DNA of 64,000 bases. Source: Oculina patagonica. Lineage: Eukaryota. Positions 4,165-32,218 of this stretch are shown here, in pieces. The notes beneath the pieces are model-generated. The model was not told where the DNA came from. It saw only the letters and a program-made list of their open reading frames with translations, and did no database searches. How positions within the stretch are numbered: the stretch's first letter is position 1; the number at the start of each line of letters is the position of its first letter. The translations under genes and the position numbers were made by a program. The DNA is taken from NCBI RefSeq assembly GCF_052425735.1, contig NC_135762.1:1116001-1180000 (forward strand). The letters are read 5' to 3'.

Positions 4165-4687
4165 CCACCTTAACTCGTGCTTCGGTACGTTTTTCGCCCG
4201 CACACCGCCCCTTTCTGTAGCGGTTTTTTTTTTTCTTAAAAAATAAAACGAAATGTTACGAAATTTTTCAATTTCTCCTGGTTTCTGCCACCTAAGGTGT
4301 CCCGTTTCCCGCCCTCTCTTCTTCCCCCGCCCACCACCCCTTCTATCCCGTACTCCCACCCTCCTGCTCCCCCCCCCCCCACGTGAGAGAAATGACTTGA
4401 TGATTTTATCACAGTTAGAGACATTGAACGCAGCTGCAAGGGCAAAGATTGCGAAACCCTGTTCTCATGGTCTTTCTAAGGCCGCAGACAAGGGGAGGAA
4501 TGAGGGTCTTCTTTACCGTGTCCGCCATCTTGGATAGACCATCGCCGGTAGAGCCTTCCCTTGATAATTTGCGCTGCCTGGAAACAAGGGCGGAGAAGGG
4601 GCGGAGTACTATTACACCTGTCGACCCTCCTATCTCATCTCAGGCGTCTTCTATTTGGTCGTGGGCGGTGCGGTATTCCCGGACTAG

Positions 4688-4882
4688 TGGAAAACACAGG
4701 GCCGGAGTCCCAGGGTCTTGGGGTCTGGAAAACGTGGGGCCCCGGGGTCTGTGGATAACACGGGGTGTGGAAAATGCGGGGTGTGAAAAACACGGGGTGC
4801 GGAAAACACGGGGTCCTGGGGTCTGTAGAAACGCGGGGCCCCGGGTCTGTGGAGAACGCGGGGTCCCCACGGTCTGTGGAAA
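4688..4882. repeat. GC-rich short tandem repeat (GTGGAAAACACGGGGT / CGGGGTCT variants)
   Basis: About 8 degenerate copies are directly visible. They explain the overlapping ORFs at 4449-4961. Confidence 0.8.
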
Positions 4883-5281
4883 CAAACCAATGAAAACAAA
4901 CCTGGCAAATGCAGGATTTACTGTCTGTGGGTAGTGTGCACTTGTCACCATTATACCACAACTATTAACTAGTTTTTATTGTTTCATAATACTATTTTAA
5001 TTACAATTTTGTATTTCTCTGTTTTAAAAAACCTTGTTTTCTACAAAAGCTGCATGAGTATAATTAAAATTTTTTAACAAAGGGTACATTAGGCAACAAA
5101 ACCCTAAAATAATTTATCTCTTCTTTCATGACACCTAAAAGTACATCTTGCATAAAAGTTCAAGTGTGGCCTGCTTTTCGACACTCAAATGAGCGTAGAA
5201 GTTTTCGTAGAGGTGTACACCTATACATTGCATTCCGTTTATATTTTACTGCACTCCCTAGTTATTGCTCCTCCAGAACTT

Positions 5282-8525: not shown

Positions 8526-11387
8526 TTAAAATGGCTCCACATTCCCCACAGCAGGTATCAACTCGCAGTATATTTCTATTCCTCGCAGGAAAACTTTCTC
8601 GTTGAGGAATTCATTGTGATCATGAAGTAGGATTGGAGTGTTGTTCATTGGGAAAAAACCAATGGCGGGATAACCAAGCTATATAGAAAAAGAAAGAAAC
8701 AGAAAAAAAAATTAGCAGGTATACTAAACGAACTTACCGAGACATGAAACGCAAAAAGACAAAAACGCGCAAGAAAAAAATATACTAAGCGAAAACTGGA
8801 TACAAGAGGTCTCCCGCCTTGTCCCCAGTTTACCAGCACATTTTTTACCCGGGGAGGGCATATATATATGCGGAAACCGAGTTATGACGATCAATGGAGA
8901 CCCCCTTCCCAAAGGCTAAGCGCAAAGCAGCGTTTAACAGCATCCAATTGTATGACAGTCAGGATCACGAGAGGGACAGGAGCGACCACGGATCGGGGGC
9001 CTCTAGGAGGGAGGGGGGATAGTTCATGGTCCTTTGACCCCTAAAATATTGCACATTTTCTCTGCTTCCCGTTAATAAACTCAATTGCCCAATATCCTTT
9101 TCTCACGTGCAATAAAGGACCAGGTTCCCTTGTTCCCAAAAATCCTTGGGACGACCTCAGCAGAGGGGCGAGCACGAGGCAAGTTTACACGTCTAGGAAG
9201 ATGTCCCCTGTTTTATGAGTCAAATGAGTCTACGAGTAATGAGTCAATAAGTCAACGTCATTTTTACACAAAGTAGGTTATTATCTATTGAGCCTCGGTT
9301 TCCCTTTACAAGTAAGCTTATAGAAGCACTCTACTTTGCTTAGTTGCACTCCACTTTGCTTGCGGTAAAGGGTAACACTATTTTTAAATTAATAACTCTA
9401 ATTTAAGATTTGACTCATTGACTGATGACTCATTTGACTCATAAAAACGTTACTCTCGTCTACAAAGCGCACGAGGAAAACGCGAGCAAGTACTTCAAGA
9501 TGAAAGATGCCTACCTCACGTATATAACGACTATCCGTTCCTGCTGGGAAAATCTCTTTCTCTATTTTCATTTCCCTAAAATAATAGAAGACTTGTAATG
9601 AGAAGACAGTGGTGAAAAAAAAAAAAAACGAGGCAGAAAAGCAAAAGCGTAACCGCGAAGATTAATGTATAAGAACTCTGTAACATTAATTTGAGGCTTT
9701 TTCTACCATTTGCGTCCATCCTTGAAGCGTGACAAATTTAACACGTAGTTTTACTTTTATAACCTCGATGGTTTTGTCTGGTTACGTGTCACTTTTGACC
9801 AATGAAACGTTTGCAGTCAGGTCGCGAAATGGACAACGTTTTGGCGCCATACGATCATGTTTTCTTCAGGAGCTATCAATATTTTCAAGATTTGCCCACT
9901 GACTTCCATGAAAGTCTGCTCGGAAAATATCACTGCAAAAAGCCAAAGGGACCGTTACACTCGACATCCTACCGTGAATATATTTGAAATTGAATTAGAA
10001 ATTAATTTAACTTACATCTTTTTGCAAGTTGTACTGAAGGCTTTCCACCAAGGATCATCATCAGTGATCGGTGTTAACACGTGATTATCGCATTTCTGAA
10101 AACAAGAAATCAAAAATTAAAACAAATTAAAACTCGAGCGAAAGAATGACGACTGAGCCACTAGCTCAGTTAACAAATAACTAACCGAAGACACTAGCGT
10201 GGACATCAATTTGTCAAAAGTCACTTTCTGCAACTTGAGGAAATTTAAAGGGCAACTGCCTTTTATTTTCGCCATTTTTTGACGAGCTGATAAACATTCC
10301 CAGTTCATAGGAAAACCACCAATAATAGTTTAGTTTTACTTGACAAATGACAGGAACACATTAGGAAGTGAGGATGACAAACGATGGCGAGGATGGCACA
10401 GATTTCAACGTGGACAAACATAAAAATGTCAAGTGCTTCCCGCCTGGCTTTCATGTTCAGGGGTGGACGCATGGGGGAAGAACGGCTGATGACGAGAAAT
10501 AACAAGTAAAACAACAACAACAATGACAACAAACAACGTCAACGACGACAAGCAACAACAAAGTATGCTGTCAACAGTCCACTTCCTATAACCGTTACTT
10601 GCTTTTTTCGTCCATTACCGAGAACGGTCGAAAAAAGAGCCGAGAGCCCCGGTGCTTTAGTACACTAGTAATACTATACTACCTGCAAAAATTCATAAGA
10701 TACATCTTCTCCAGCCTCTTCACACCACTGCTTTACTTGATTCTCAAATTTCTGAAACAAGAGAAGAAAAATAAATAAGAAGAGTAGCAAGTTGCTTCCC
10801 TAAAGTTGCAATAAACTCCCTTTGGATGCTAATGCTGGTCCATTTGCAGGGCCCCACAATTTGACTCTGGTACCCATTTATACAAGGGTGGAGGGAGGCA
10901 CCGTGAGGATTGAGAATCCTACCCAAGAACACAAGATCCAGTGTCCAGTTCGCTATCCATTATGGCACCCCGCCCAATAAAAGATTATAACAGTGGTACT
11001 CATTAAAATTGAGTAAAGAAAAAAAAAAAAACATAAAAATGTCAATATTTACTCTACCTCAAGGTCCATTGTTGGTGCAATTCTTATGTCAAACACTAAA
11101 AGAAAGGATCATTCTATTACAAAAGAATGATAATTTCACACCAGTGTAACAAAAATGTTTTAAAAATGCTACAGCAAGCTCAAGGGCGTAGAAGTCAAAC
11201 CAGAGGGTTTTGAAGATGAATTAGGTCCACCGAAAGCATTTGTAGATGACAACAAAGACGAAGACTGAGATCCAACAACAACAACAACCCTGAGGGCCAG
11301 AGGACTTTTTTTTTTTTTTTTTGCAGGGAAGACACTATTTGTGAGCGGCGATCAAAGATCGCGGCTTCTTCTCTTTGTTCCGCCCAC

Positions 11388-11420
<33 letters not shown>

Positions 11421-14400
11421 GGAACCCAGGGTACATTGAACAGCGTGAGGGAATTGGAAAGCCACATTGATCACAAATCCATGCCGGCACGAGGAATCCT
11501 AACATGTACATTACACTCCGGCTTAGGAGTATCTTATTAAAGCATGATACCATTAAAGCATAAACTCCTGTACAAAAATAATTACCTGATGACATTTCTG
11601 ATGGTACTACATTAGCCTGGACACCACCCTTAAGAAAGAAATTTCAACAACAATAATTATTTGGTAAATTGACAGTTATTGACAAGGCTTCTTTTTGTAT
11701 TAGATTTCAATATAATATCCAGCATGCTCAGATTAGTATGAAAAACCAACCAACAAACAAAAAAATCCAACCATACAAAAGTGAAATTAATATGATGTTG
11801 TAAATAGGCAAGTCTAGATCTGTGACTGAATTGTTTTTCTTTTTACCTCAGCAACTGTCCAGTTAACTGTAGTGACATCTCCCAATCTCAGATCAGCATT
11901 TGAGTTCAACCTTGTCAAAGATTAAAATACCAAGGCTAAAGGATAAATAATCTATGCATAAAATATGTATTCTCTTGTAAACTGTATTAACTAAAGGTGA
12001 TCATTATCGGAGAAAAATGCCAATGAAAGTTTTTTTTTGTTGAACTGTTGGATCAGGTAATATTCCAGACTGTAATTGAGAACTATATTCTCTACCCCTC
12101 CAAAAGGAAAAAAAATATAGAAAAAAATATTGAAGCCCTTGACAAGAATTAGGTTGGAATTGTTGAACAGTACAACCTAAACAACTGATTTCTCAGACCT
12201 CTCGATAACTTGAATTAAAAGTATTATTTCCCTTGGATTTTGTTCACCCAGTCAAACACTGAAATTTTAACCTCTGATTTGTTGACCAATTTGCGTTTTC
12301 TATGGAAGTTTGGGAAAACAATGGGGTTTCTCTGTCTGTACTTGCACATGATCGATAGTCCTACCTCTTCTTTTGTTCATCCCTGAAAGCTGTAAATGAC
12401 TGAACAACTTTACACTGTAAAAGGAAACTTAAGTTAGTATAAAAGTCATGTATTTCATCTTTCTTTTAATTTTGAGTTGTTCTTTTTGATGTTTAAGTTG
12501 AAGGAAGCAGACACTGAATGTGAGAATGCAGGCCTTCCATGAAACACAGCCACAACAAGGTCAATTAGTTAGAAAAAGAAGAAAATGTTATTAGAAATGT
12601 ACTCACCATCTTTTCAGCAGCTGTACTCTCAATAAACCTGGAGCCATGACCAGGTTGGCCTTTGCAAGTAACCTTCACCCCTAAAAAAAAACAACCGATC
12701 ATGAGTCAGTTTCACAGGCTATGAGCTCTATTACACCAGGGCTGCAAATAACAGTCAGTCATCGGACATTGGTAGACCAAAATTTGTTCATGTCCCACGA
12801 AATCCCAAGTGTGGTTGGACATGACGTCCGGACAATTATTACTATTCTCTCGACCATTTTTCTTAGCAGTTTCTGTGTTACAACAACAAGCTCTTAAACA
12901 ACAAGCTCTTAAACAACAAGCTCTTATTATAGTCGAGAAAGTAGAGCTCGACCAGTGTCTCCACCGCCATATTGCAATCAAAAATCGCGACACATTTGCG
13001 GACAATGTTTTGATTATGAATCATTTTACGGCAACAATGAATAAAAATATGTCTGACTACAATTTTGTCTTGTCTGACCAAGATTGTGTCTTAGTACGAC
13101 ATATGTCCGTTCAAGTGAAAAAAATTATTTGCAGCCCTGTTACACTGTATGTAGAGGGGGAACAGGGGCATCTGAAACTGATGCCTCCCATGACTTTTAC
13201 TCCCACCTCTAGCCTCTTTCTGTAGCCATTCCCTCCTCTTTATCTCATATATATTGCGAGACTATAACAAAATACATGCATTCATAATACCCTGTTAAGT
13301 GCATGGCTTGATCGACTCAATGAAGAAGATTGTTTGAGTTCCAGAATGCTCAAGGCACTGACTAGAGGAAAAAGGTCATTAAAAATGCAAGAAAATATTG
13401 CTGTTTAAAGATAACTACTTACACCACACAGATCTCTCTCCATAAAATATTGTGAATGAATCTGTTGGGTTTGCAAGTCCTGGTGTAAAAGTTAATCAAT
13501 GAAGACACAAATCATTATCACTGTATCTTACAAGATTAGAAAATATTTACATACATGTACTGTTACAAAAAAATTGTTTGTAAATGCGATAATTATAAAA
13601 TTTTTAATAATTATACTTTTTGAGGGATGTAAACAATAGGTGGAAGGTGAAAAAAAAGCCACCTGAGGACTTGATTCTTCTGGCTTAAGTAAAGACTGTG
13701 TCTGGCTAGATCTTTCTTTTAATGAGACCCAAATTTTCACCTATTGGTGAAGGGGTGACAAAAAATTATAAGAAATTGGGGCCACACCTGGACCCCTCTT
13801 GGAAGACTAGCCCAGGACACAAGCGATGGAGAGCAGAAGTCATCAATGGCCTAGGCTCAATCCATAGATGGGCCTGACCGAGTGATGTAATTTACTTAAT
13901 TTATCCTCAAGCAAATGGGGCTTTTTTTGATCTCTAGCTTAAATGGCTATTGTATTGAGTTCACAAATTTGCATTATCTTTAATTTTTGTAGATTAACTT
14001 TTTTTGCACAGCTTCATTGTAAATAGGTCAGTACCCCACTTTATAAATTCTGTGCTTCTTACGAGTATATATTTTAAAGCTAAGATGTACAAGTCGTAAA
14101 AATGAATGAAAAAGTACAATTAGGTATACTAAAAACTAAATTAATTAAATATTTATTCTATAAAAATTAGAAAAAAAAAATACTGCATACCTTCATCCAA
14201 AGCAAAACCAAGGTTGAATGACTTAAAATCATCTGATTTCAGAAATTCTCTCATTCCATCTCCACCAATTTCTTCATCTATGTTATGAAAAACACAAAAA
14301 GGTCAACAAGAGAAAGTAATTCAAGATGCAGCCTTAAGTAGTTAAGGTTGCAGAAAACAATACATATTAAAGCAACATTTTGATACATGTGGCATATATT

Positions 14401-17600: not shown

Positions 17601-20445
17601 AGTGTATGTCAAATTTCACATATCTCCTCTTAAATTTCTAACCCTGCAGACCATTTTAGACGTCAAAATCCCTACCGTTGAAGAGCTTCACGATGTCAAA
17701 TTTTCGGTGGGTTGGCCACCCCCCCCCCCCAATCCTGGGCCAGAGCATTGATAGGTGCATAACCTATACCTGCCAACTCTCACGCCTTAGGCGTGAGTCT
17801 CACGCCTGCGAGTTGAAAACTTCGATCTCACGCCAACTCACGCTTACGAGCCAATTTCTCACGCCTAGTTGAAAAATGTGAGTTATTACAACCATAAATA
17901 GAACACTTTCCAAATATGTGAACTCAAACCAATGTGAGAAACGAAAACCCCATGTAAACTGAGTTAATGAAGATATTTTCCCCGAAATCTCAGAGTTTTG
18001 ACAAGAAAAGCATTGTGTGGTTCCAGAAAATATCCATACCCCCACCACGGAGGGTATTTCACGTAAGACCCCCCACCTCTCTGGAATTTCCGTTTTTGTT
18101 AAGAAAAATAAACCCCCCCCACCCCTCCGGAATTTCCAAAAGTATATTGCGTACCCCCCAGCCCCTCTGGAAAAAAAGATAAATTGTACAATGCTCTAAA
18201 TTTTAGGCCACCTCTCTTGTAAACAGTTACAGTGTATAACTGATCGATCGGAAGATATGTTAGAACGATACATACGTTACATGTACTGCTGAAGACAAAA
18301 TAAGAAATTTCCTCAAAAGTAAACAAACAAAATATCTGGTAGTCACTTGTCAAATTACCTTGTTGTATAACCATCCATCCCTTTTCATTCCAATCGCTTT
18401 AGAAAACCGCTATTAAAATGTATCAGAACACAGATTTGAAGTGTTGATATAAACCATAAACATTCACCGTAAACGTGATCGCAAAATCGCTAATGCTCGC
18501 TGAGAAAGCAAAATTTAACAGGAAAATTACAAACAAATAGCCAGAAATAACAAAACCATGTTAATCTCGAGTTTCTGACATCATTACACTATTTTCATCG
18601 CTAATAAACATGAAACTTTTCACAAACAAGGACGATTTTCCTTCGATCGAACGTGAAACAAGCAACCCTTGACACCAGGGTAGCCGGTCATAACGCCCCC
18701 AAGATAAAACGCCCCTGAGACATAACGCCCCCTTTAAGACATGACGCCCCCTATTGCGATTTATATATTCAGAGAAAGATCAGAGAAGAGAAGGATCCGA
18801 GGATGTAATAAAATCAATAAATGATATGAACTACTTTAGTTTATTGGCCTGTTTGCGTTGCAATTCATCCGTTAATGGCAATTGTGATTCTTCTGTTTTT
18901 TTTTACTCGATCGGTGTCGCTCGATCCATGTGAGCAACGAGTAGTAAGATGAATAACTATGTAAAGATACTTACCTTAATTTTTACGGTGCGATTCCATT
19001 GTTTAACTAGGTTACACTTAGTTCACTTAGTTTCTCACTCGGTTTTACAAGTACATGTACGAGGCAAGGATAAAAGCTAAGGTAATGAAAAGAGAAGAAA
19101 AAAAAGGAAAGAACAAGAACCTTGGATCGGTCGAACCCGCTCACTATAATCTCGTTTTTTTACGATCGAAAACTGAAAAATTACGTTCCTGCTATCGTTA
19201 TCATAAAATTACAAATAAAATTTGCTTTCTTACAATGGGGACATCATGTTTTATATGGGGCGTTATGTCTTAAGATAAGGGGGCGTTATGTCTTATAGGG
19301 GGCGTTATGTCTCGGGGGCGTTTTACCTTCGGGGCGTTATGACCGCAATTCGACACCAGTGCCTTTCGGTCAAACCACGTGACAAGTTTCGGGGGACTGG
19401 TAACAAGTAATGGCGGACGAACGAACATGGAGGATTTCAGTGAAATTATTTGCTTTCAGTGTGCTTTCAGGAGAAAGAAAACCCGTTTTAAATGTAAAGC
19501 GATTGTGAATCAAGAACCCAGAGTGCTATTTTTGCTATGTAAAACACTTGTAGAGTAGGTAAGAAACAATTTTTGAAACTAGTTTGCACTGCATCAAACT
19601 TGACCGTCTGGAAACATAATTCCACTGGCAACCCCCCCTCCTCTTCGGAATTTCCTGTGCCCTTGACCCCCCCACCCCTCTGGAATTTCCAATTTCCTCC
19701 GTGGTGGGGGTATGGATATTTTCTGGAACCACACATTGAGAATGTGGTCGTGTTTAGCAAACACGTTCTGGGACTGTGTTCGGGATATGTTCGGAACGTC
19801 TTCGGAATACTTCGGACATCTTCGGGAATGGTCGTGTCATCTCCGGAAATCCTAGCACTCTCAGGATAAAAATCTCACGCCTTTGACCCAGAAAAAGTTG
19901 GCAGGTATACATAACCCCCTTTTCTTCTGGGCCTCCATGCTTTATGGCCACCTCTAGCAATCTTCCACTGGTACTTGACAGGGTTTTCATGAATCTCACT
20001 GATTCTAATTCTGTGCACGTGTGCCTGGGAATTATCTCACTAACTGAGGGGGGAGGGACAGGATGGTAAATCTCCCTCCTCCCTACTTTTTGAGCCGATT
20101 TCTCCCTCCTCCCTATCCTGTTCCGCCCCCCTCCTAACTGTTTGCTGTTTAAATGTAAAATGTTAACTACAGTTCTACTTACTAACCTTAATACATTTAA
20201 ATGGAAGGTCGAGTTCTTTTGCAATCCTTTCAAGGAAAATGATAGCACTTTCTGAAATGGGAAATATAAGAATTTAATAAAATGTTATTTATTACACCCC
20301 GAAGGAAGACAACTCGCAGGTCTGTAGTTTAGACCAAGCTACACTTACCATAGTCCGGATTTGGCTGAACAGTTTTTATCCTCAAGTACTCTCTAAAAAC
20401 TGTAACGGAGGGGTCTTCTTCCACTTTCGCCCGCTTGGCCGCCAT
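8526..20445 (-). CDS. ACY1: Aminoacylase-1 (M20 metallo-amidohydrolase), 405 aa, 17 coding exons
   Basis: Exons 20445-20349, 20251-20187, 16897-16790, 16278-16207, 15563-15541, 14950-14874, 14277-14191, 13479-13423, 12680-12607, 12414-12365, 11910-11847, 11628-11586, 11095-11058, 10751-10683, 10095-10016, 9575-9515 and 8678-8526 sum to 1218 nt, all GT-AG and in frame. Motifs [64 protein letters not shown] on the - strand at 8401-8406. Confidence 0.97.
10795..10960 (-). mobile_element. tRNA-derived SINE fragment
   Basis: Reverse copy of the core CCTCCCTCCACCC...TATAAATGGGTACC shared with SINE copies at ~26355, 42132 and 60336. Confidence 0.6.
12737..13138. mobile_element. hAT-like MITE with an internal 15-bp tandem repeat
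   Basis: TIR CAGGGCTGCAAATAA / TTATTTGCAGCCCTG, flanking TTACAC on both sides, (ACAACAAGCTCTTAA)x3 inside. Confidence 0.7.
15714..16047. mobile_element. Tc1/mariner-type MITE
   Basis: Termini TACCGTAAAATTC / GAATTTTACGGTA, TA-flanked, with internal TATAAGCCC repeats. Confidence 0.75.
17765..19909. mobile_element. Three nested non-autonomous DNA transposons in ACY1 intron 2
   Basis: Outer TIR TATACCTGCCAAC / GTTGGCAGGTATA flanked by CATAACC; a related shorter copy lies at 62629-63032. Middle element 18014-19735 with TIR TGTGTGGTTCCAGAAAATATCCATACCCC. Inner element 18679-19351 with CATAACGCCCC repeats and 8-bp TSD GACACCAG. Confidence 0.85.
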
Positions 20446-20832
20446 CTTTGCAAAAAGTGACTCCCCTCCCCTCCCTACTGCCTCTGACCCCTGGCAGGCA
20501 AGTATTCACAAGCGATTTACAAGGGGGATACCCTTAAGAATACCGAACGGAAATATTAACCAAACGAATGGTTTTCCCTGTGACTTGCATCATAAAATTT
20601 CTAGTGATTTTTTTTATCGATATTATAATAATTAACAGACCTTTAAAATTTACAGACTATTTTTTCTACTAAAGATTATTGATTCCACCCCACCCTGGTT
20701 GGGTTCCATTTTATTTTCGCGCGCCATGCGCATTGCGCCTTATTGTGGAAGTGGGTTTCTTTCTTTTAATTGTTTTTATTTCAGTTTCATCTCTAATAAG
20801 CAGCCTTTCTTTGGAAGTACGTTATAGGACAG
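20438..20832. promoter_or_regulatory. Bidirectional promoter shared by ACY1 and the HDAC gene, including the likely non-coding HDAC exon 1 (donor after 20832)
   Basis: ACY1 ATG at 20445 sits in a YY1-type AAGATGGCGGC. E2F-like TTTTCGCGC, NRF1-like GCGCCATGCGCA and ETS GGAAGTG lie at 20714-20753. Donor CAG|GTGAGA at 20832/20833. Confidence 0.65.
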
Positions 20833-21610
20833 GTGAGATTTTATATCAGTTTTGGTTTTCTTATCGCAGTTATTGTAATCATTTACAGAAACGCAAGAAA
20901 ATTCGTTTCCGCTCATACTTCAGTGACCTCCGATCTGACCTGATCAAGTGAGCTGGAAATGCGGAGATTTTTCTACGAAAACATCGTAACAAACAGGGGA
21001 ATCTCTGTTTTGAACTGAAGATCCGTTAAAAACACTAAATATTTCAAGTAATCGAGGAAAATCAGATGCTTTGCTAGTTTGCCATGAAAAGCCTAGTTCA
21101 GTCACACCAGTGACATAACGGCAAGGTCACGCAAACTCAAAAAAACACCTCACGTTGATGTTTTATGTCCCCAGTGACCCAGTGCGAACAACACAACATA
21201 AGAACATAGCAGGAACGTTAAAACATAACCATAATGAAATAAGGGAAAAACTGATCTTTTTTTATGTCATGTCGCTAGTGTAAACCAGGGTAAATAAGCT
21301 TACTAGTTACATTCAGAGATGGCGGAGAGTTTTGAAACGTGGGGGGACTAAGACTGTCCCAAAAATACTTGGCAGGTTTTCATATTTGTAGCAACTTTTT
21401 ATTTTCTGACCGAAGATTTCTGAAGATTCTGTGATTGTTGTTCAAAGCCATACAAATGTTTCCGATCATTTTTTTAACTTTTCCGAAGATAAACAAAGTT
21501 TACCGAAGACTTCCAAGTAATTTTCTATAGCCCCCCCCCCTGCCCCACCGCCTATGACATTGTACTGCTGGTACATTCATATTTCTCCTCTACTTGTAAC
21601 TTACAGAATA

Positions 21611-24600
21611 ATGTCATCTGGGGATGAAGAAAATACTAATAGCTTGCAAAACTTGGTAAGTTTTTACATTATTTTGCAATACTGTTGTTACATGGCAGGG
21701 GTATTTTGCAGAATCCTGAACGCAGAATGCAGAATGATGCTCTAACTAGCAAATTAAAGCTAACCACAACCAATTAAAGCCAACCACAAGCAAACCAGGG
21801 TGAAGCTAACTGCAAGCAAACCGGGTTGAAGCTAACTGCAAGCAAACCGAAATGAAAGCTAACTGCGAGCAAACCAAAGTGAAAGCTAACCACCATCAAA
21901 CTGCCCGCTGACCATTATTCTGCGTTCTGTATTCTGCATTCTGCAAAATACCCCTGCTGGTCGTAACATTGTACTGTAAATAAAGGGGATCACCATTATC
22001 CTATGACTTGTTTGGAGCTCATTTTTCGGCAGACCCTTGAAGTTTTCACTACTGGTATATTGACAAGGGGATTGCTGGTGTTGAGACAGTTAAAAATTTA
22101 ATTATTTATTGCTGGTCATGTTGTTCTTATTCATTAAACTTTTAATTATTCCATCGTGCTGTTTTTTTAGCTGAGTCATCCCAACTGATTACCTGCATAC
22201 ATGTATTCAGTCGTAGTGTACCATTGGCGGATCTAGGGGAGGGGCCAGGGGGGTCTGGGCCCCACCTTATTTTTAGGGAAAACCAAAGCCAACAGTGCCG
22301 AGAAAAAAATATTAATTTCCAGAGCGGGCCCCACTCTTATTCCAGGTTCTGGATAATCGGGCCCCCACTTACCTGAAGGTCCGAATCCACCACTGTGTAC
22401 TGTTATGTACTTGTATATGCTTGCAAACCTAACACATTCTCTTAATTATTACTAGAACGTCAATGAATCCACAGACAAGTCAAAAAGGTAACATGTTGTT
22501 AAAATGTATTTAATAATGTTGTTATTCCTTACAGAACAATACAACTGTGAGGTGTTGTTAGTTTAATGTGTGAGCTACCAATCAAAACAAACAATGGCTC
22601 AAATTGGCATTAATAGCCGATTCCCTCTATAGCGCGCGCCTGCAGGGAATTACGGTAGTTGTATTCATCAAATCTTGCGCAAGACTCAGCAACGTGCATT
22701 GTTGTGAGTTGCTGAGATTTGATGAATACAACTTCCGTGATTCCCTGCAGGTGCGCGCTATAGAGGGAATCGGGTATTGGCTGGGGCACACTGCCCTGTA
22801 TTAGTTTAGCCTGTGCGACTTCTAGTGACTGCATGACAAAAGAACCCCCTTGTCTGTCCAGCACTGTAAGCTGATATTATGAATTGGACAAGAGTTTTGG
22901 TTAGCAGGTGATATTTAAAGGCAATGCAACCAATAAGCTTGGTGGAAGTTTTTGTGCAGACTTAACATACTGCACCAGACAGGAGTGACCCTAGTTTGCT
23001 AATAAAAATAATAGCATAAAACAAATCCAATCGTCTCTTCTATGCCAAAACCAAAGCAAAACTTAAATTAAAAAAAATTATAATTTCTTATTGTTATTTT
23101 TTGTTGTTACTTTTAGAACAGGAATTGTCTTTGATGAAAGGATGAAAAAACATTTCAATGTGTGGGACGTGTAAGTTGTTTGTAGATGCCTTCATGCATT
23201 ATGTATTTAGTGCTGCACATGTAATTTAACTTATAATCCACTTCATTCAAGAAAAGAAATTTATTCCATGAAATATACTTGTCACAAAGTCTCTTTTTCA
23301 CTAGAGACCTCAATGTCATCGGTATTACAGCATTTTAATTTGGTTCCTCAACAAACTACAGACTTTGCAGAATAATTATTTCCAAACCTCACATGCATTG
23401 TATAAAAAGTAATGGAAATACAAAAGTTGAAAGTTATTAGAAAACTAATCTTGATGCTATCCTTGATGCAAATTTTGATTTTTAGAACTCATCCCGAGGT
23501 CCCAGACAGAATTCAGCGGCCCTATGACAAACATAAGGAGTACGGCCTGCTAGAAAGGTGCCAGGCACTCCCAGTAAGCTAAGTCAAGAGCAAATTATTG
23601 TGTTCTACTCGACATATTTCTTTGCATGTTGGCTGACAGAAAATATAGTTTTGTTTCATTGGCAGTGGATGACAGGAAACTAGAGCCCCATTTAAAATGT
23701 AACTGCCATCTCACAAATAAATAATAATTAAGATTTAGGTATAAAAATTAGTAAAATTATAATTTTATTTTATGTGTGATGACACATAAAAATTATGAAA
23801 TGGCATTTCATAATTTTCTACTGTGATTTTGTATGAATGGATGTGAGCATTCACATTTTTTTTAGAAATTGACTGTCACATTTTTTTTGGAATTTGACTG
23901 TTTAGATAAAAATTGATAAATCTGTTGTGTTTTTTAGTCGCGGTTTGCTACAGATGAAGAGCTTCTCTGTCAACATAGGTATGTTTTTTAAAGACAGGCT
24001 TTTAATCAATGAAAGTTAGGGGGTGGCATAATTATTATCATGGTACCTTCAAGATTGTGAGACTGAGAGAGAGAAATTATATCTTTTCTGTGGGTCTGCT
24101 GAAAGTTTCTTAACCATGCAAAAATATTGAGTCTATGAGACCATGGATCACAAAAAAATTATGAGATGGCGAGATTCATAAAATTTAATTTATTAAGTTC
24201 TGTGAGCAGGGTGCAAAGCAATTCAATTTTCCAGCTTGTCCTTCGGGCAAGCTTTAACCAGGATGTACTAGCCCAAAGTCATTTTAACTAGCCCAAAAAA
24301 AAATCCTTATAAGCATGATTAATTTCCTTTAAAAATTTCCCTGAAAACTTTCACTTCCCCAATGGGCAAGAGAAGGATAAAATCCACTAGCCGGCCGCAC
24401 GGCCGCAAATTCCACTAGCCCCAGGCTATTGGACATGCAATTCTTTGCACGCTGACCAGTAAGACAATTTTTTGAAGGATTATTTGCCACTCCTTATATA
24501 GAATTGTTGACAAAAACATACTAGACCATTACCTTGAACCATGATTTTAATTGAAAAAATTACTTACTTATTGTTTAACTACTATGATTTAACCCTATTG

Positions 24601-27600
24601 AAAATTAATCTGACTCATTTTTGGAAATATCATCTTCAGTATATTTATTAACGAAGTCAACATTTTTTATTATTAGTTTTATGTTATTTTCAACATTGAA
24701 ACATCAAATGAGTACCAGCTCTTTCGACCACTCTTGCACAATTTGTGAAAAATAATTAGAACTTAATACTATCTCACTGCAAAGATAGTTCTAACATTGT
24801 TATGAACCCGATCTTTACAAGTTGTGAACACACAACGTTACCTTACAATGTTACAGCAAGGAACATGTTAACAAGATGAAATCCACTCAGACCATGACAA
24901 AAGAGGAACTTTATAACATAAGCGCATGTGATTATGATTCAGTCTACATGAGTGAGGTGAGAAGTGGCTGGTTCAATAGACAGCTTTAATTTGTTAACCA
25001 TTAGTGGTAATCTAATAGCCCTGTACCCAGAATAATAGAATAATAGCAGAGTGCCCAAAGGCTCTTACTGTCACTTGCATCTAAGCGTGAACACTCGCTG
25101 CCAAAACATGATTTAATAGGGTATCAAACGTTGCTTGATTCGACATCAAATGTTGAAGTTTAGCAGACCACAACGACAATTTTCGCGCTCAAAATGTGAC
25201 CAGAAGAAGTGACTGCGTGCCTGTGGCACCCAGGCTTTGCTAGAGCACATCTCTGTGTACTAGTTCAGCTTAACTAAATCTGAACTTCCTTAATCCCGTT
25301 TTAACATTCACATCTCTGGTAACATTTCTATGTATTGTCAGCCAACAACATCTGGTAGATATGAAGGCAACTCAAACAATGTCAAAAATTAATGAAAAAT
25401 TGCTCGCAAAAGGAAAAGCCGTGACATTTGAGCCTGATATGTACTATAGTCAGGTAAAATGCTAATTACTGATCTAGCTTTATTTTTCATTAATTATTTA
25501 AAATGCTGATGACTGTTCTTGCTTTTCATTAATTTTATTTTGCAAAGAACCATTTACTGATTAAAATTAATTCAAATTAATAATTAGTAACAAGACAACT
25601 GAACAATATTTTTGTGTAATAAAATTATTCTGTACAATGGATTTCGTTGGCAGAGTTAATTTACATTGCACATACAGATTTTGCAATAATTTCAACACAA
25701 TGTATGTTTAGAATTTTTGATACTGTTAATCTGAATTTTGTATGATGGGTAACATGCATGATTTTAGAACAACTTGAATGTATATTTTTCTCCCAAATGG
25801 AGTACAAGTGTTTAATATGGGAAGTGAAGGTTTCTTTATCTTGTTAACAGCATGCCTGTGAATGCGCTCGTCTTGCGTGTGGTTGTACATTGTCTGCAGT
25901 GGAAGCTGTTGTAACGAATAAGGTAACAGAAATCCGATTTGGTAAAATTTCAAATGCGATCTTTGGTTACAAATTTGATAAAAACAAGCTTTTGATTACC
26001 AGTCTAGTCTTTAACAAGTAATGACATTACTCGTTTAGGACTACAGATTGGTAGTTAAAAGATTGTTTTTATCAAAGTTTTAACCAGAGATCGTTTTTGA
26101 AATTTTACCAAATGTCTTACCCTGATTACTCATCTATTTTTAAAAGAAATGAGATAATTTGTCAGATTTTTTGTTTGCAAAATTTTTAACGAAGTCATGC
26201 TCAGTTACTGTTAAGATATACGGTATAAGTATTTGGTGATCCTTATCTGCTTTGTAAGGGCCTTTCATGATAAATAAGTCAAATGATAACATCATGGTCA
26301 AGAAGACTTGTCCAATTTAATGAAATCAATGCATTTCTGATTACACATTTGTGAGAGGCGCGGCAGCCTATTGGTTAGCTTAGCGCACTGGACTCTGGAT
26401 CAAGCGGTCCAGGTTTGATTCCTGGCCAGGGTCATTGTGTGCTCTGTTCTTGGGACACTCTACTGTCACAACGCCTCTTTCCACCCACAATGAGCGCCAA
26501 AAGTGTTGAGACAGTCGGCACTTTTTGAGTACCTTGGACAAATTTTACCCCTCACCCCTTCAATATAACCCCCTCGCCCCAAAACAATTGATGTTGTATT
26601 TGCTATCTGCAAGACTTGCCTCGTTTGAGTACAACATTGAAAAGGGGGGAGGGGGAGTGGTTCAGAAGCGGCAGCAGATTAAAGGTGAAAAAACGGGAAT
26701 TTTAAATTAGTATCAATTTCATCCAATTGTCTCAAGGACTTTTGACGCCCATTGCAGGTGTATAAATGGGTACTGGCGAATTTTGTGCTGGGGGTAACCC
26801 TGGGATGGACTCGCATCCCATATCCAGGGGGGGAGTAGAAATACTCCCATGAAAAAACCAGTAAAAGCTCCACTAGGGGCCACTAGGGCCACTAGCCTCG
26901 AATGCAGACATTATTTCAGTTCATCACCTGGGGGTGGGGGAATTTTTGGAATTTTATGGTATTGATTTAAGGCTAATTATGTATGTGCAAAGTAGAGATA
27001 GGTAATATGATAATTTATATACCAGTGCAATGTATTTAATGCAGTTTATTACATTCCCCTATTGTATTTTCTCAGGTCCAAAATGCAGTGGCTATTGTAA
27101 GGTATGGTATTCTGTTGCTGTCCAACATCTAAGAGTAATAAATTCATAAGCAACCATGTTGACTTGGATATGAGATGATAGAATGATAGAAAATGTCTGA
27201 CAGCATGGCAGCAAAACCAAGTGCTGTGATCTTCACTGGGCATTACTGATTACAGTATTATTAACAGTCATTGGTACAGTAATTGAACACATAACACTGT
27301 TACAATTAATGTTGTTGACCAAAGCTTCAAGTTGACATGGCGAGTCGAAAGGTAGTGTATGCGCTGCTGCACATGCTGAATACTAATGAGATATAACTGC
27401 AATATGGCAAACATATTTTTTAATGCGTTTTCTTTCTTCTTTCTCTATGGACATTTTTTTATCTTTTATTTTCATTTGTTAGACCACCTGGGCATCATGC
27501 TGATACTGAGTTTGCAATGGGTTACTGTTTTTTCAATAATGTGGCTGTTGCCGCAAGAATAGCTCAAAAGAAATGGAATGTTAAGAGGTAATCATGAACA

Positions 27601-29497
27601 AAAAAAAATTTTGAAACTACTGTCCTTTGTTTTACATTTCTATTTTGAATATGATTAATAATTGTTTAATATACTATTATGTGATAATAATTATTGTGTG
27701 ATCATTTAAGGGTGCTTATTGTGGACTGGGACATTCACCATGGCAACGGCACTCAACATCTCTTTGAATCTGATCCAAGGTGTGGCTGGTAGCTAAATAA
27801 ATCAAACATTTGCAAATTTGCGTAATTATGCACAGAATTACAGGTTAGCAGGTGGACCAATAAACCAACAACAGTCAAGATAAAAAATGTTTGATCTGAC
27901 TTTTTTACTTCTCACTTTGTCATGTTTCGTTCTTTTCTAGTGTTTTGTACTTCTCCATACATCGATATGACCACGCCCAGTTTTTCCCGTTCTCCACTTG
28001 TGCTAATTACGACGTAGTTGGAAGTGGACCAGGGAGAGGATTTACAGTAAATGTACCATGGAACAAGGTTATTGATAATGTGTTTTATTCTTCATAATTG
28101 CTTGGCAATAGGTGTTAATATGAATAATAACTATTAATATTATTTTTTTAAAGTCCCATGCTTGAAATTTTGATTAGAATTGCCTTTGATTGTTATTACA
28201 TTTTGTAATACTTGATTTAGTAGCAAATTGTCTTCAGTTTGTGATTTCCATTATTGTGATTATCTCTCTGTGTGAGAACATATTAAATATTGGTTAGAAG
28301 GTCTGAATGTTGCCCTTCTTTATTACGTAAACAGAAACACATGGGAGATGCAGATTACCTGGCCGTCTTCCATCATATTTTACTTCCTATCGCTTATGAG
28401 GTAAATTGTTTGTGTTTGAGTATCAAAGTGTACATCCTAAGCAAAATCTGTGCTATGTTAGCCAGAGTTAATAAGTGGCAATGGCGCCGCAAAGTAAGGA
28501 AACTGATCCATTGAATACTGGTAACAAGTACATTGGCTGACATGTGATTCAACAGTGATTAGCCTAGTATATGTTTTGTTAGATGTATAAAAATGTATGT
28601 TCAGTAGATGTTTGCAAGCAGGCTCACATTTGGCAATATGCATGAGTTGAGAAGCCATAACAACAGGTGAGTGATTGGCGAAGTTTGGAGTGGAAGCTGG
28701 AATACACTCAAGCATATATATTTTCAAGCCTTAGCCTGTTCACAGGGTACCCACCCTTTGCACCAGATACCTTANNNNNNNNNNNNNNNNNNNNNNNNNN
28801 NNNNNNNNNNNNNNNNNNNNNNNNNNNNNNNNNNNNNNNNNNNNNNNNNNNNNNNNNNNNNNNNNNNNNNNNNNNNNNNNNNNNNNNNNNNNNNNNNNNN
28901 NNNNNNNNNNNNCCTTCAAGGCACCATTAACATGTTTACTGAAGACTTAAGTCACTCTTCTCCTCTTTTATTTTTAGTTTGAGCCTGACCTTGTTCTGGT
29001 ATCAGCTGGGTTTGATTCTGCTCGAGGAGACCCTAAGGTAGAGCACTTGTTTTTTTAGTTTTTTGTCACTCCAAAACAATTTTTGCAACCTGGTGTTTTG
29101 CTTCACATCATCGTTATTCTTCTGTTATATGATATGGTTGGTTGGTCTTTAATAAGCTCTTATTGTTTTGAAAAAGCAAAACAAAGAACAATGACACTTG
29201 AAAATGTTTAGACTGAGATAGGCAGAGATTGTTTGTCTTTCAAATGTCTTTCAAAGTTGTTCTTCCGATTTCCCAGAGTTTTCTTGCGTCATATAAAGAA
29301 TCTTAAACTTAAGGTAGCTTTTCATTCGCAGGGACTTTGTGATGTGACTCCAGAAGGATACCATCACCTTACAAGAATGCTGATGAATTTAGCAAATGGC
29401 AGAGTAGTCATTGTTCTTGAGGTACTGCATCTACTACACTTAAACTTTTCAAAATTGGGGTTACAACTATTTAGAATTTTAAGCTCACTTCTCAAAC

Positions 29498-29534
<37 letters not shown>

Positions 29535-32218
29535 TAACCGTGAAGGAGGTTTTGATACCCGGTCTTAATTAGCATAGATATTTACGATTTTATTTCTCCG
29601 TTTACTCCGTTCGTTGTTTTTGCTTCGATTGAGAAGATATATCAAATACCCGAGACAGTGTTTCATCGGCTATCCAAACACCTCGAATTTTGTCAAAAAT
29701 ACTTCGCTGCGCGTCTTATTTTCAACTCTCTGCTTGGTGTTTGGATATCCCGATGAAACACTGCCTCTTTTGTTTGATATATTGCATCAAAATCAATCCT
29801 TCTTTGCCAGTTTTGGTTGAGGTGACCCCCCCCCCCCTCTAACCTGTGTATATCATCTGCCCATTACCCTCAGAAACAATAGGAGTAGACAGATGAGTAC
29901 AATTGATCACTTCTTCACCTCAGTCCAGTGCTTTCCTTTCCAAAAATATCAGTTACACTTAATTATGTTTTTCCCAGGGAGGCTACAATCTCAGTTCTGT
30001 CGCAGAATCCATGTGTGCCTGCACCTCTTCTCTTCTTGGAGATCCGTGTCCACGTCTGGATGGATCTATGACACCTTGTGACAGGTAACATGACGATACA
30101 GCTGCCTTCCATTACTTGCCGTTAAAAGTTGGGGCGAGCACATGGCGAGGGCCTGGGGCTTCATAGGATGAACTGAAGTTATATTGCTGAAATTAAGATT
30201 GTGATCAGCGAGAGAGAACCTGACCTTTTTAACCAACATATCAAACCTGCAATGGGATCGTCCGTGGAACTGACTCTATTAAAGTGGACTATGTCACGTA
30301 ATTTTAGGCAATTTCGGCACTGACCAGGTCGGTCATATATTAACTGAAATATCACAATAACGCCTTAAAACTGTAGAAGAAATCAAAAGAAACACAAAGG
30401 TCAAACAGGGGCATGGATGGGCAAAATTCGAGAAGATTAAAACGGATTGCGTCCAGGTTGTTTGAAAGTGTCATTTAAAATGCTTGAAAATCACCCTTGC
30501 TTGTTATATGGCTGTGATTTTGCCAATAAAAGACTTTTTCTCTGCCAATTTGAAGTTTAGAGCTCTTAATCAACGAAAATAAATAGAATTTCCTAAAATA
30601 CCGTGACCTAGCCCCTTTAACGTGACTATTTTCAAAACTGAAAGCTACTGAGCTGTACCTTAACGTAAAACTGTTAATTATACTGTACGCGGCTTTAACT
30701 TTACTCTAATACCTTGTTTTTTTTACACAATTTATAGTTGTTTTGAGACAATTGTGAACGTTATTGGTGAGCACAGCAAGTACTGGAAGTCGCTTAAGAT
30801 TGCAGGTTAGTTTAGCAATACGTGTGGTCGTTAGTGTAAGCTATAGGGCTGCAACGATACACCGGTGCACCGGTCAATCACGATATTATTTGTCAAGATA
30901 CGAATATCGGTATTTGAACGAAATATCGCAGTATCGTGAAACAATAAAATATTCTTAATTAAAATTCAGAAATTACTGTTTTTAATTACTTTTTACCCAT
31001 GTCAAAGCCCTCAATAGCGATTTATTAAAGTTAGGGACTAGGAAGTTCCATTCTGCATCACTTTCGATCACATATTCTTTAAAGATCGAACAAATTAGTG
31101 TCAACTGACACAGCCTTGTGTGTCCATAAGCAAAAAACATGCGGCTCTTGAAAATTTCACTTTGCAAGTAAGATTTCGCTGCTAATAAAGTGAAAAAAAT
31201 TGGGTTACCAAAAGAATTAAGTAAAATTATAGCATTTGTCAACTGTAAAATAATGTTGTATCGTATCGTGTATCGTATAGTGGCGCCTATATCGAGATAT
31301 GTATCGTATTATGAAAACATGTATCGTTGCAGCCCTAGTAAGCTAGAACTCGAGTAGGATAAACGTGTAACAGAAACATGTTCTGGGCTGACATTTTACT
31401 CACCGTGCGTATGTTTGTTTTGCAATTTACAGGTCACTGATCTACAACTTCGTGTGTATGTAAATGATTTTCTTTTTTTTTTTATTCAAGCCCTTCTTAG
31501 TGGAAATGTACAAGAAGTCGAGGATAAACCCAAAGAGGAGAAGAAAATTGAGTGAGTATCTTATCTGTGCTTTGCCTTGACAGGGAAGTGTCCTTTGCGT
31601 TTTGGATGATAAAATTTTGTAGTACAACTGAGAGGAAAAAGCGAAGAGTAGCAAAGAGTCACATGTTTAAGTTTTCAGCACCAGCATTTACTGATTTTTT
31701 TAAACATTTTTTGTGTCATGATAATTCCAACTGATTTTAAATGTGAATTGATCATTCGTTTCTTTGTGTTTTGTGTTTTAGATATCCAAAACTACCAGCA
31801 GACTTTACAGGTGTGAACAGTTTCCATGTTAAAACGTGTTAGCAAACAGGCTCTTCTATTTCCTTGGTTGTTTGTTATCTTTTTGCTAGTGAGGGTAGCC
31901 TGCGTAGCAGGCGTAAAAAGGGGGAGAGGGTTCGAAGGAGGATTGAGAGAATTCTCTCCTCCCCTTTTACGCCTGCTACGCATGCTACAGTCAGGGTAAA
32001 TGAAACGTTCGTTGAATCCGCGAGACGCACGGAATGCAGATGGTGTCAAAAGTGGGATTGACTTAGTCGGATAAAGAATGACGAAATTGGAACACTTTCA
32101 TGAAGCACCTTAACCCAGTAGAAAAATCGTGTTTTCTTTATTGTTAATCAAAACTTCTGCTGTATCCTAAACCTAACCGTCTTTTGTCTCTCTGTTTTTG
32201 ATTTCAGCCTTCTGTTGA
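21611..32218 (+). CDS. Class IIb histone deacetylase (HDAC6/10-like) with a single catalytic domain, ~416 aa, 19 coding exons
   Basis: Exons 21611-21655, 22456-22487, 23117-23170, 23486-23573, 23938-23978, 24857-24956, 25851-25922, 27076-27101, 27483-27587, 27711-27779, 27941-28067, 28335-28400, 28978-29037, 29332-29421, 29978-30084, 30738-30805, 31491-31551, 31782-31810 and 32208-32218, all GT-AG and in frame. Motifs [54 protein letters not shown]. The last three exons are less certain. Confidence 0.92.
21695..21957. mobile_element. MITE with internal ~25-bp tandem repeats
   Basis: TIR GCAGGGGTATTTTGCAGAAT / ATTCTGCAAAATACCCCTGC, internal (AAGCTAACTGCAAGCAAACC) repeats. Confidence 0.75.
22612..22778. 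mobile_element. ~170-bp hairpin element, copy 2
   Basis: Same arms as 6590-6760, with a diverged inner part. Confidence 0.85.
26355..26910 (+). mobile_element. tRNA-derived SINE interrupted by a small TIR element (~26489-26752)
   Basis: Head GAGGCGCGGC...GGTTTGATTCC, core CCACCCA|GGTGTATAAATGGGTACTGGC split by CAATGAGCGCCAAAAG...CTTTTGACGCCCATTG, and tail region CATCCCATATCCAGGGGGGAGTAG. Confidence 0.75.
28775..28912. other. Assembly gap (138 N) inside an HDAC intron
   Basis: Run of N. The flanking exons join in frame (PIAYE|FEPDL), so no coding exon is needed in the gap. Confidence 0.99.
30279..30620. mobile_element. TTAA-flanked MITE (Kolobok-like)
   Basis: Termini TTAAAGTGGACTATGTCACG / CGTGACCTAGCCCCTTTAA. 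Confidence 0.65.
30844..31337. mobile_element. hAT-type MITE
   Basis: TIR TAGGGCTGCAACGATAC / GTATCGTTGCAGCCCTA with a perfect 8-bp TSD GTAAGCTA. Confidence 0.9.

Follow-up and report, generated by a model that had tools for sequence, protein, structure and literature searches.

The window analysed here is a 64-kb stretch of DNA from the coral Oculina patagonica (G000:C5:1116001-1180000, in an assembly of 529 Mb), and it carries on the forward strand a gene for a class IIb histone deacetylase (HDAC). We consider it quite likely that this is the only class IIb gene of the coral, that its product consists of a leader resembling a nuclear export signal (NES), one fully competent domain for zinc-dependent deacetylation and a short, charged C-terminal tail, and that the enzyme would act on acetyl-lysine and not on polyamines. 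The new elements are a conserved stand-alone class IIb domain, distinct from HDAC10, in which the gatekeeper residue of the first catalytic domain (CD1) of HDAC6 sits on a scaffold similar to the second (CD2), and an ancient duplicated exon encoding the L2 loop.

The coding sequence spans 21611-32218 and is divided into 19 exons, with the ATG at 21611 and the TGA at 32216-32218. All 19 exons are open and bordered by AG and GT, and every intron is of the GT..AG type. The exons were first read by eye on the forward strand and then mapped exactly from database protein P0153, a 416-aa hypothetical protein of Oculina patagonica (ACROYT_G017728) that is identical to the conceptual translation. A single Hist_deacetyl domain (PF00850) covers residues 46-343 with an E value of 3.5e-100 (335.6 bits against a cut-off of 27.9; profile positions 1-297 of 298), and Pfam recognizes no other domain. 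The first-pass annotation had described one deacetylase domain with the model ending soon after it; Pfam and the protein mapping agree with this, and its coordinates are exact.

The domain contains the motifs THPEVP in the L1 loop, MGYCFF, AQFFPF, FDSARGDPKG (split by an intron between the lysine and the last glycine) and LEGGYN. The L1 loop (WDVT--HPEVP) has the same length as in HDAC6, without the two-residue PECE/PACE insert. The mosaic noticed at first reading, GDPKG and GYC of the CD1 type together with HPEVP and FFP of the CD2 type and no PEACE-type insert, is present in full in the alignment. Residues H157, H158, D195, H197, D288 and Y328 occupy invariant columns among 41 aligned class IIb domain sequences, in keeping with the early statement that the catalytic and zinc-binding residues are intact. 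The AlphaFold2 model of the protein has a mean predicted local distance difference test (pLDDT) score of 89.7, rising above 95 in the core. The two zebrafish HDAC6 domains are matched equally well, CD2 with a root-mean-square deviation (rmsd) of 0.9 at 54% identity and CD1 with an rmsd of 0.7 at 49% identity (TM score 0.96-0.98). In the alignment the coral protein is 53% identical to CD2, 46% to CD1 and 49% to HDAC10, and across comparisons the values range over 53-55% for CD2 and 46-49% for CD1. The best phmmer score is 445 bits, to zebrafish CD2.

Both ends of the protein show recognizable features. The coral leader, ending in NSLQNLNV, aligns with the zebrafish HDAC6 leader that precedes CD1 and ends in NELQNLDV (aligned segment ...EEEMSNELQNLDV). 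Similar leucine-rich motifs occur upstream of CD1, and not of CD2, in other HDAC6 proteins. Judged from the sequence, the coral leader is a putative NES-like motif homologous to the pre-CD1 leader of HDAC6. At the other end the protein terminates 29 residues past the domain. The profile recognizes a pseudo-deacetylase domain in several HDAC10 proteins and none in the coral protein. Five stony-coral orthologues share the C-terminal tail F-[TI]-A-x-C, which in the window lies at 32208-32215 and differs from a standard CaaX box. The Xenia orthologue ends in DDAC, and the anemone and Trichoplax orthologues are without a tail that ends in cysteine.

A second catalytic domain was sought at two scales. 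In the window, every open frame of both strands was searched with an unfiltered profile hidden Markov model (HMM); 12 frames score E < 1e-4, all of them known exons, and exon 8 gives a weak match (E 0.4). No second set of HDAC exons is found in the 64 kb on either strand. Searches of the whole assembly with PF00850, a two-domain mosquito HDAC6 and P0153 as queries reveal no second class IIb domain elsewhere. The HDAC matches in the assembly are the class IIb locus itself, an unplaced contig (C1477), a class IIa gene on contig C7 and distant loci of the class I/IV type. Contig C1477 measures 10.7 kb (L118, G000:C1477:1-10000) and is 92-97% identical to window positions 19738-27441. Because this identity includes introns, we regard it as a haplotig-like second version of the gene's 5' half and not as a distinct paralogue. 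The locus is apparently, as judged from these searches, the sole class IIb deacetylase gene of the coral.

The class IIa gene on C7 is identified by its hallmarks CSCG...HPEHPGR and GHSPALGGY. This HDAC4-like gene (C7:11099536-11107294) has the catalytic tyrosine (LEGGYS) and not the histidine of vertebrate class IIa enzymes.

The zinc finger of HDAC6 (ZnF-UBP) is also missing from the locus. No zf-UBP match is found in the coral protein or on contig C5, and together with the HMM search of both strands of the window this bears out the early remark that neither a second domain nor ZnF-UBP exons lie nearby. An HDAC6-type ZnF-UBP does occur in the assembly as a lone internal exon on another contig (C10:7295544-7295762; locus L028:545-763). 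This exon is the best zf-UBP match of the assembly, with E 4e-24 to HDAC6 finger structures compared with 1e-10 to USP49. A tblastn search located neither the C-terminal part of this finger nor the exons upstream of it, and the 50 kb around the exon (30 kb on the upstream side, 20 kb on the downstream side) contain no deacetylase remnant. A word-based database search for cnidarian proteins with an HDAC6-type ZnF-UBP returned 14 candidates only, none of them cnidarian, and carries no information on whether such proteins exist.

An assembly gap within the locus and the divergent second copy of the 5' half on C1477 raise the alternative that the gene is a truncated or decaying one, or a mis-assembled fragment of a two-domain HDAC6. 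We hold this to be extremely improbable, since it is contradicted by the intact exons, by spliced RNA and by a transcript contig of an orthologue. The splice sites are canonical in all 19 exons. The RNA evidence consists of assembled contigs of four runs from four studies, and the GT..AG joints listed in these contigs connect exons 1 to 8 exactly as in the model, which shows that the gene is transcribed and spliced. In a related coral, a transcript contig of 1892 nt (L112, run ERR9592229) covers all 400 aa of the orthologue P0154 without introns, and after the stop codon it continues for about 600 nt of 3' untranslated region; the transcript of the related coral therefore ends after one domain. 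Orthologues of several genera agree in length and C-terminus, contigs derived from transcripts among them; none of the catalytic residues varies; and a caveolin gene lies downstream both in Orbicella and in the window. The C1477 copy is haplotig-like, as described above. Neither the RNA joining exons 1-8, nor the orthologue contig, nor the tail common to five stony-coral orthologues, nor the assembly search points to a second catalytic domain; splicing to such a domain was an outcome that the first-pass annotation had named as fatal to its reading.

Three intronic stretches (22500-22900, 24900-25300 and 26500-26900) are covered in all four RNA runs by contigs that differ in many variants and reach depths from hundreds into the thousands. 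Expressed repeats of high copy number, located within the introns, are the most likely source.

Active-site residues and predicted substrate preference

HDAC6 and HDAC10 are heavily studied drug targets, and their choice of substrate hinges on the gatekeeper residue, which is lysine in CD1, leucine in CD2 and glutamate in HDAC10. The lysine gatekeeper of HDAC6 CD1 (K330 in zebrafish, K353 in human) sets the specificity for C-terminal acetyl-lysine (Hai et al. 2017, PMC5454378), and in human CD1 extra steric bulk comes from F105 and Y225 (PMC5454378). The N8-acetylspermidine activity of HDAC10 requires both the glutamate gatekeeper and an inserted P(E,A)CE 3-10 helix (eta-A2), and the E274L mutation converts HDAC10 into a lysine deacetylase (PMC5454378). 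In the L2 loop, the position that binds acetyl-lysine is S568 in human HDAC6, corresponding to D101 in HDAC8 and D94 in zebrafish HDAC10 (PMC5454378).

In the coral protein, K295 and Y167 occupy the positions of the CD1 gatekeeper and of Y225, and His46 occupies that of F105. Serine 115, encoded by exon 6a, is at the position of human HDAC6 S568, HDAC8 D101 and zebrafish HDAC10 D94. The rim of the active site would thus join the lysine gatekeeper and GYC tyrosine of human CD1 to the open, histidine-containing L1 loop of CD2 and zebrafish CD1. Such a mosaic rim is expected to prefer a negative charge next to the acetyl-lysine (a C-terminal acetyl-lysine, for example) and to be less constricted than human CD1. 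Both HDAC10 determinants are absent, so the protein is expected to be a poor N8-acetylspermidine deacetylase. By analogy with the characterized enzymes, we propose that a protein with this CD1-type lysine gatekeeper probably removes acetyl groups from lysine in the cytosol and does not act on polyamines.

Orthologues, phylogeny and ancestry

One-domain orthologues of 373-432 aa are found in stony corals (Acropora-like, Montipora, Orbicella), anemones (Nematostella, Actinia), the octocoral Xenia and Trichoplax. GDPKG is present in 9/9 full-length cnidarian and placozoan sequences; GYC is present in all eight cnidarian ones and GFC in Trichoplax. In databases the orthologues are named 'HDAC6-like' (Montipora foliosa, Orbicella faveolata), 'HDAC10-like' and 'HDAC6-like' (isoforms of Acropora millepora), 'HDAC6' (Nematostella, 429 aa) or by locus only (Trichoplax TRIADDRAFT_56890). 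These automatic names are inconsistent and should not be read as function.

A careful maximum-likelihood (ML) tree was built from 60 domains under LG+C20, the outgroups being the class IIa gene of this coral and homologues from bacteria; its non-bilaterian sampling is thin, with no sponge, ctenophore or medusozoan. The coral gene falls within the class IIb clade (support 97/93), with the coral class IIa gene and the bacterial homologues outside, and the cnidarian sequences and Trichoplax form one clade (98/92). A clade of all CD1 domains and vertebrate HDAC10 (100/98) leaves out the coral clade, and vertebrate HDAC10 groups with vertebrate HDAC6 CD1 (96/85). This nesting suggests that HDAC10 originated from CD1 on the vertebrate stem, in which case 'HDAC10' names in invertebrates would be misnomers.

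The tree also bears on the alternative that the gene is a cnidarian orthologue of HDAC10, a polyamine deacetylase without the pseudo-domain, as suggested by the Acropora millepora name 'polyamine deacetylase HDAC10-like'. The coral protein has FDSA-x-GDP-x-G, VQN and a single active domain in common with HDAC10, and its best non-cnidarian matches of similar length are vertebrate HDAC10 proteins at about 50% identity. This ranking of HDAC10 first is an artefact, because the length filter of the search excluded full-length HDAC6. When the coral clade is forced together with HDAC10, the approximately unbiased (AU) test rejects the arrangement (delta lnL 57, p-AU 0.0155), HDAC10 itself nests with vertebrate CD1, and the coral protein has lysine in place of the glutamate gatekeeper, no PECE/PACE insert and no pseudo-deacetylase domain. 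We therefore consider orthology with HDAC10 very improbable; it is ruled out by the tree, the AU test and the absent HDAC10 determinants together. The suggestion made at first reading, that the enzyme is probably not a polyamine deacetylase, is strengthened by the same test and by the sequence features, and neither an ordinary HDAC10 nor a pseudogene is what the tree and the intact gene reveal.

The position of the coral clade relative to CD1 and CD2 is less sharply defined. The ML tree places it weakly with CD2 (p-AU 0.44; support 51/92). A position as sister of CD1 plus HDAC10, which is the topology of a quick tree, is not rejected (p-AU 0.26), nor is a position outside all bilaterian CD1, CD2 and HDAC10 (p-AU 0.145). 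Each of the 15 introns in the coral domain, the phase-1 intron at the domain end among them, has a counterpart of identical position and phase in CD2 of Mytilus edulis HDAC6, and mussel CD1 has 11-12 of them. Being ancestral characters, shared introns cannot tell a CD1, a CD2 and a pre-duplication origin apart; the fold comparison likewise does not separate CD1 from CD2 origin. In a survey of gatekeepers, lysine is found in all nine cnidarian and placozoan sequences, leucine in all CD2, bacterial and class IIa sequences, and glutamate in HDAC10. The gatekeepers of CD1 are mostly lysine or glutamate, with leucine or valine in a few invertebrates and glutamine in one.

Two histories are weighed here. 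In the first, the gene descends from an unduplicated class IIb gene with a leader and one domain, and the CD1/CD2 duplication and the fusion to ZnF-UBP came later, on the bilaterian stem. We take this to be a real possibility, though we stop short of calling it probable. The tree with a clade of all bilaterian CD1, CD2 and HDAC10 is compatible with it (p-AU 0.145), every two-domain protein of nameable source is bilaterian, and the HDAC6-type ZnF-UBP lies at a separate locus. The mosaic of CD1 and CD2 features and the full complement of 15 domain introns (15 in mussel CD2, 11-12 in CD1) point the same way. Against this, the clade falls beside CD2 in the ML tree and not outside both domains, although its support there is weak (51/92), and protein P0181 combines one domain with a ZnF-UBP. 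The outgroup gatekeeper is leucine, so an ancestor with lysine needs a reversal in CD2, or else lysine arose in parallel. The thin non-bilaterian sampling of the tree counts on the same side.

The second history is a secondary reduction, in which the ancestor of Cnidaria and Bilateria already had CD1, CD2 and ZnF-UBP, the cnidarian and placozoan line kept CD1 or CD2, and the ZnF-UBP survives as, or within, another gene. It is plausible, short of being the outcome we would expect. If CD1 was kept, the sister position to CD1 plus HDAC10 (p 0.26, the quick-tree topology), the charged gatekeeper and GYC common to CD1 only, and the leader homologous to the pre-CD1 leader are all accounted for. If CD2 was kept, the same holds for the CD2 grouping (p 0.44), the 53-55% identity and the 15/15 shared introns. 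These CD1-like and CD2-like signals contradict each other. The orphan ZnF-UBP exon at C10:7295544-7295762 fits a reduction, but the surrounding 50 kb contain no decayed catalytic domain, and the same loss must be common to, or repeated in, Cnidaria and Placozoa. The first-pass annotation had called the gene an ancestral-like or lineage-specific stand-alone enzyme. The stand-alone class IIb part stands; between ancestral-like and secondarily reduced the AU values (p 0.145-0.44) do not decide, and the one-domain form is no peculiarity of this coral, since Anthozoa in general and Trichoplax have it too. The distinct specificity named in the annotation is a prediction from the active-site residues.

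Gene structure and the tandem L2-loop exon

The coordinates of all exons, of the tandem exon 6b and of the assembly gap are collected in Table 1. The gap does not disturb the reading frame. The last codon of exon 12 (E275, to 28400) and the first codon of exon 13 (F276, from 28978) are both whole, residues 275 and 276 are adjacent in all orthologues, and an intron that matches in position and phase interrupts the genes of Xenia, Trichoplax and Nematostella as well as both mussel HDAC6 domains. Since the gap lies within this phase-0 intron, the coding sequence is complete and the frame is independent of the true gap length. The intron that precedes exon 13 shows, as far as its sequence can be read, no second gatekeeper exon of the kind seen in mussels, and a small exon within the 138 N is formally possible. 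The orthologous intron is 84 nt long in Xenia and about 180 nt in Nematostella, which leaves little room for such an exon.

Table 1. Exons of the class IIb deacetylase gene and associated features (window coordinates)
Feature	Position	Strand	Basis
Exon 1: start codon and leucine-rich NES-like leader (residues 1-15; putative)	21611..21655	+	Exact P0153 match; RNA joint 21654>22455, 3 runs
Exon 2	22456..22487	+	Protein mapping; RNA joints on both sides
Exon 3: start of catalytic domain	23117..23170	+	Protein mapping; RNA joint 23170>23486, 4 runs
Exon 4: L1 loop THPEVP, without HDAC10-type two-residue insert	23486..23573	+	Alignment
Exon 5	23938..23978	+	RNA joint 23976>24855, 4 runs
Exon 6a, 100 nt: helix and L2 loop (...YDSVYMSE), S115; exon of the main transcript	24857..24956	+	RNA joints 23976>24855 and 24954>25849, 4 runs
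Exon 6b, 112 nt: tandem paralogue of 6a, candidate mutually exclusive exon	25342..25453	+	Same phases, AG/GT borders
Exon 7	25851..25922	+	RNA joint 25920>27074
Exon 8: 26-nt micro-exon, VQNAVAIV	27076..27101	+	RNA joint, 4 runs
Exon 9: RPPGHHA (catalytic H157, H158), MGYCFF (Y167)	27483..27587	+	Alignment
Exon 10: DWDIHHG (zinc ligands D195, H197)	27711..27779	+	Alignment
Exon 11	27941..28067	+	Sequence reading
Exon 12: ends on a whole codon	28335..28400	+	Protein mapping
Assembly gap (run of N) within the phase-0 intron between exons 12 and 13	28775..28912	.	Sequence reading
Exon 13: zinc ligand D288, gatekeeper K295	28978..29037	+	Alignment; gatekeeper role from PMC5454378
Exon 14	29332..29421	+	Protein mapping
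Exon 15: GGYNL..., catalytic Y328	29978..30084	+	Alignment
Exon 16: end of domain	30738..30805	+	Protein mapping; following phase-1 intron common to Trichoplax, Nematostella and mussel CD2
Exon 17: charged tail, low model confidence	31491..31551	+	Protein mapping, AlphaFold2
Exon 18: YPKLPADFT-	31782..31810	+	Protein mapping
Exon 19: -AFC and TGA, conserved C-terminal Cys tail of stony corals	32208..32218	+	Orthologue comparison

Exon 6b starts about 390 nt downstream of exon 6a and has the same entry and exit phases. The lengths of both exons (100 and 112 nt) are of the form 3n+1, so joint inclusion shifts the frame, the usual signature of mutually exclusive exons. Compared with 6a, exon 6b encodes four more residues, one of them in the segment that contacts the substrate; the loop loses the serine and becomes more acidic. 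Of the Orbicella faveolata isoforms, X1 (P0173) carries the 6b version and X2 the 6a version, and the genomic 6b of Orbicella is 83.5% identical to that of the coral studied here, with a flanking intron that does not align. The dN/dS ratio (nonsynonymous to synonymous substitution rates) of exon 6b is about 0.2, from few sites. An in-frame indel of 6 nt in 6b sets the window apart from the haplotig C1477 and from three RNA runs; the C1477 copy is without the 6-nt insertion of the window and has one D>G change. Nematostella has a homologous pair of exons, 97 and 109 nt long, with the same phases and canonical sites. In Xenia and Trichoplax the introns at this position measure 84 and 98 nt and contain no second exon. 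This distribution places the duplication on the hexacoral stem or earlier. Taken together, the Orbicella and Nematostella exons, the dN/dS ratio and the in-frame indel speak for retention of 6b by selection. Its inclusion probably gives rise to a less abundant isoform, whose loop in contact with the substrate would be longer and more acidic.

In the Orbicella sequence MZGG01000679.1 (L113), the first six exons, including 6a and 6b, are present twice about 6 kb apart (4274-7251 and 10278-13256). Such a repeat may reflect a genuine duplication in tandem or an error of the assembly.

A different tandem pair is seen in mussels. The HDAC6 CD1 of Mytilus edulis (L117) has two tandem 20-aa gatekeeper exons, one ending in AIGCPE (Glu) and one in SIGDYK (Lys). 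Among proteins P0033 and P0281-P0294, annotated isoforms of M. edulis, M. trossulus and M. galloprovincialis carry the Glu or the Lys exon, a few M. edulis models carry both, and the single M. californianus isoform seen has the Glu exon. Alternative splicing of these exons would switch the specificity residue between the HDAC10 type and the CD1 type.

A broader proposal combines the ancestry and the splicing: Cnidaria and Placozoa would retain a pre-duplication one-domain class IIb enzyme with a charged lysine gatekeeper, and hexacorals would vary its substrate range through mutually exclusive L2-loop exons. As a whole we think this proposal rather unlikely. If the pre-duplication origin is true, the coral protein would be a natural stand-alone 'CD1-like' enzyme and a key outgroup for the origins of HDAC6 and HDAC10 specificity; in mussels the exchange would then concern the Glu and Lys gatekeeper exons of CD1, and in vertebrates the two states would have become fixed in separate genes, as HDAC6 CD1 and HDAC10.

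Several points weigh against the interpretation given at the outset and its extension to exon 6b. The assembly is a gapped draft that was searched exon by exon, so the absence of a second domain is strong evidence and not proof. The predicted substrate preference is drawn by analogy from three or four residues. The specificity of human CD1 needs F105 besides K353 and Y225, and the coral has histidine at this place, so the lysine may matter less. As apparently the sole class IIb domain of the coral, the enzyme may have to deacetylate internal acetyl-lysines such as tubulin K40, which the CD1 lysine gatekeeper disfavours. As for exon 6b, none of the joints listed for the four RNA runs is a spliced joint into it, and the contigs that cover it look unspliced, run into the upstream intron and have a background depth of 5-11. 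A database search for 6b-type proteins returned Orbicella isoform X1 only.

Comparison with known class IIb deacetylases

Public gene models already exist for the gene and its orthologues, and the HDAC6/HDAC10 family is well studied. In the literature we found no paper describing cnidarian class IIb HDACs or a cnidarian-placozoan group, and one annelid paper labels invertebrate genes 'hdac6/10'. The coral protein offers a small, easily expressed test of the lysine gatekeeper outside a two-domain context, and the gene provides an outgroup for dating the CD1/CD2 duplication. For coral cell biology it raises the question of how tubulin and cytosolic proteins are deacetylated without a canonical HDAC6.

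Canonical HDAC6 differs from the coral protein in overall layout, since the latter has one catalytic domain and no C-terminal ZnF-UBP (PF02148). The layout of HDAC6 varies in other animals: the HDAC6-like protein of Procambarus clarkii (P0001, 2025 aa) has four deacetylase domains and a ZnF-UBP, with the third domain degenerate. With HDAC6 CD2 the coral domain shares the HPEVP L1 loop, FFP, the serine of the L2 loop, LEGGYN, the 15 introns and the highest identity. It differs from CD2 in the gatekeeper (lysine, compared with leucine in every CD2 sampled), in GYC in place of GFC, and in having neither a preceding domain nor a following ZnF-UBP. With HDAC6 CD1 it shares the lysine gatekeeper (K330 in zebrafish, K353 in human), the GYC tyrosine (Y225 in human), the N-terminal place behind a leucine-rich leader and the fold (rmsd 0.7). 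However, identity to CD1 is only 46-49%, FFP replaces FWP, and His46 takes the position of human F105, as H82 does in zebrafish CD1.

Vertebrate HDAC10 resembles the coral protein as a class IIb enzyme with one active domain, about 49% identity, FDSA-x-GDP-x-G and VQN. The coral protein differs in being without the glutamate gatekeeper (E274 in zebrafish, E272 in human), the PECE/PACE insert and the pseudo-deacetylase domain. The cnidarian and placozoan gene models are its direct orthologues, with the same one-domain layout and GDPKG, and between them and the coral gene there is no difference in kind.

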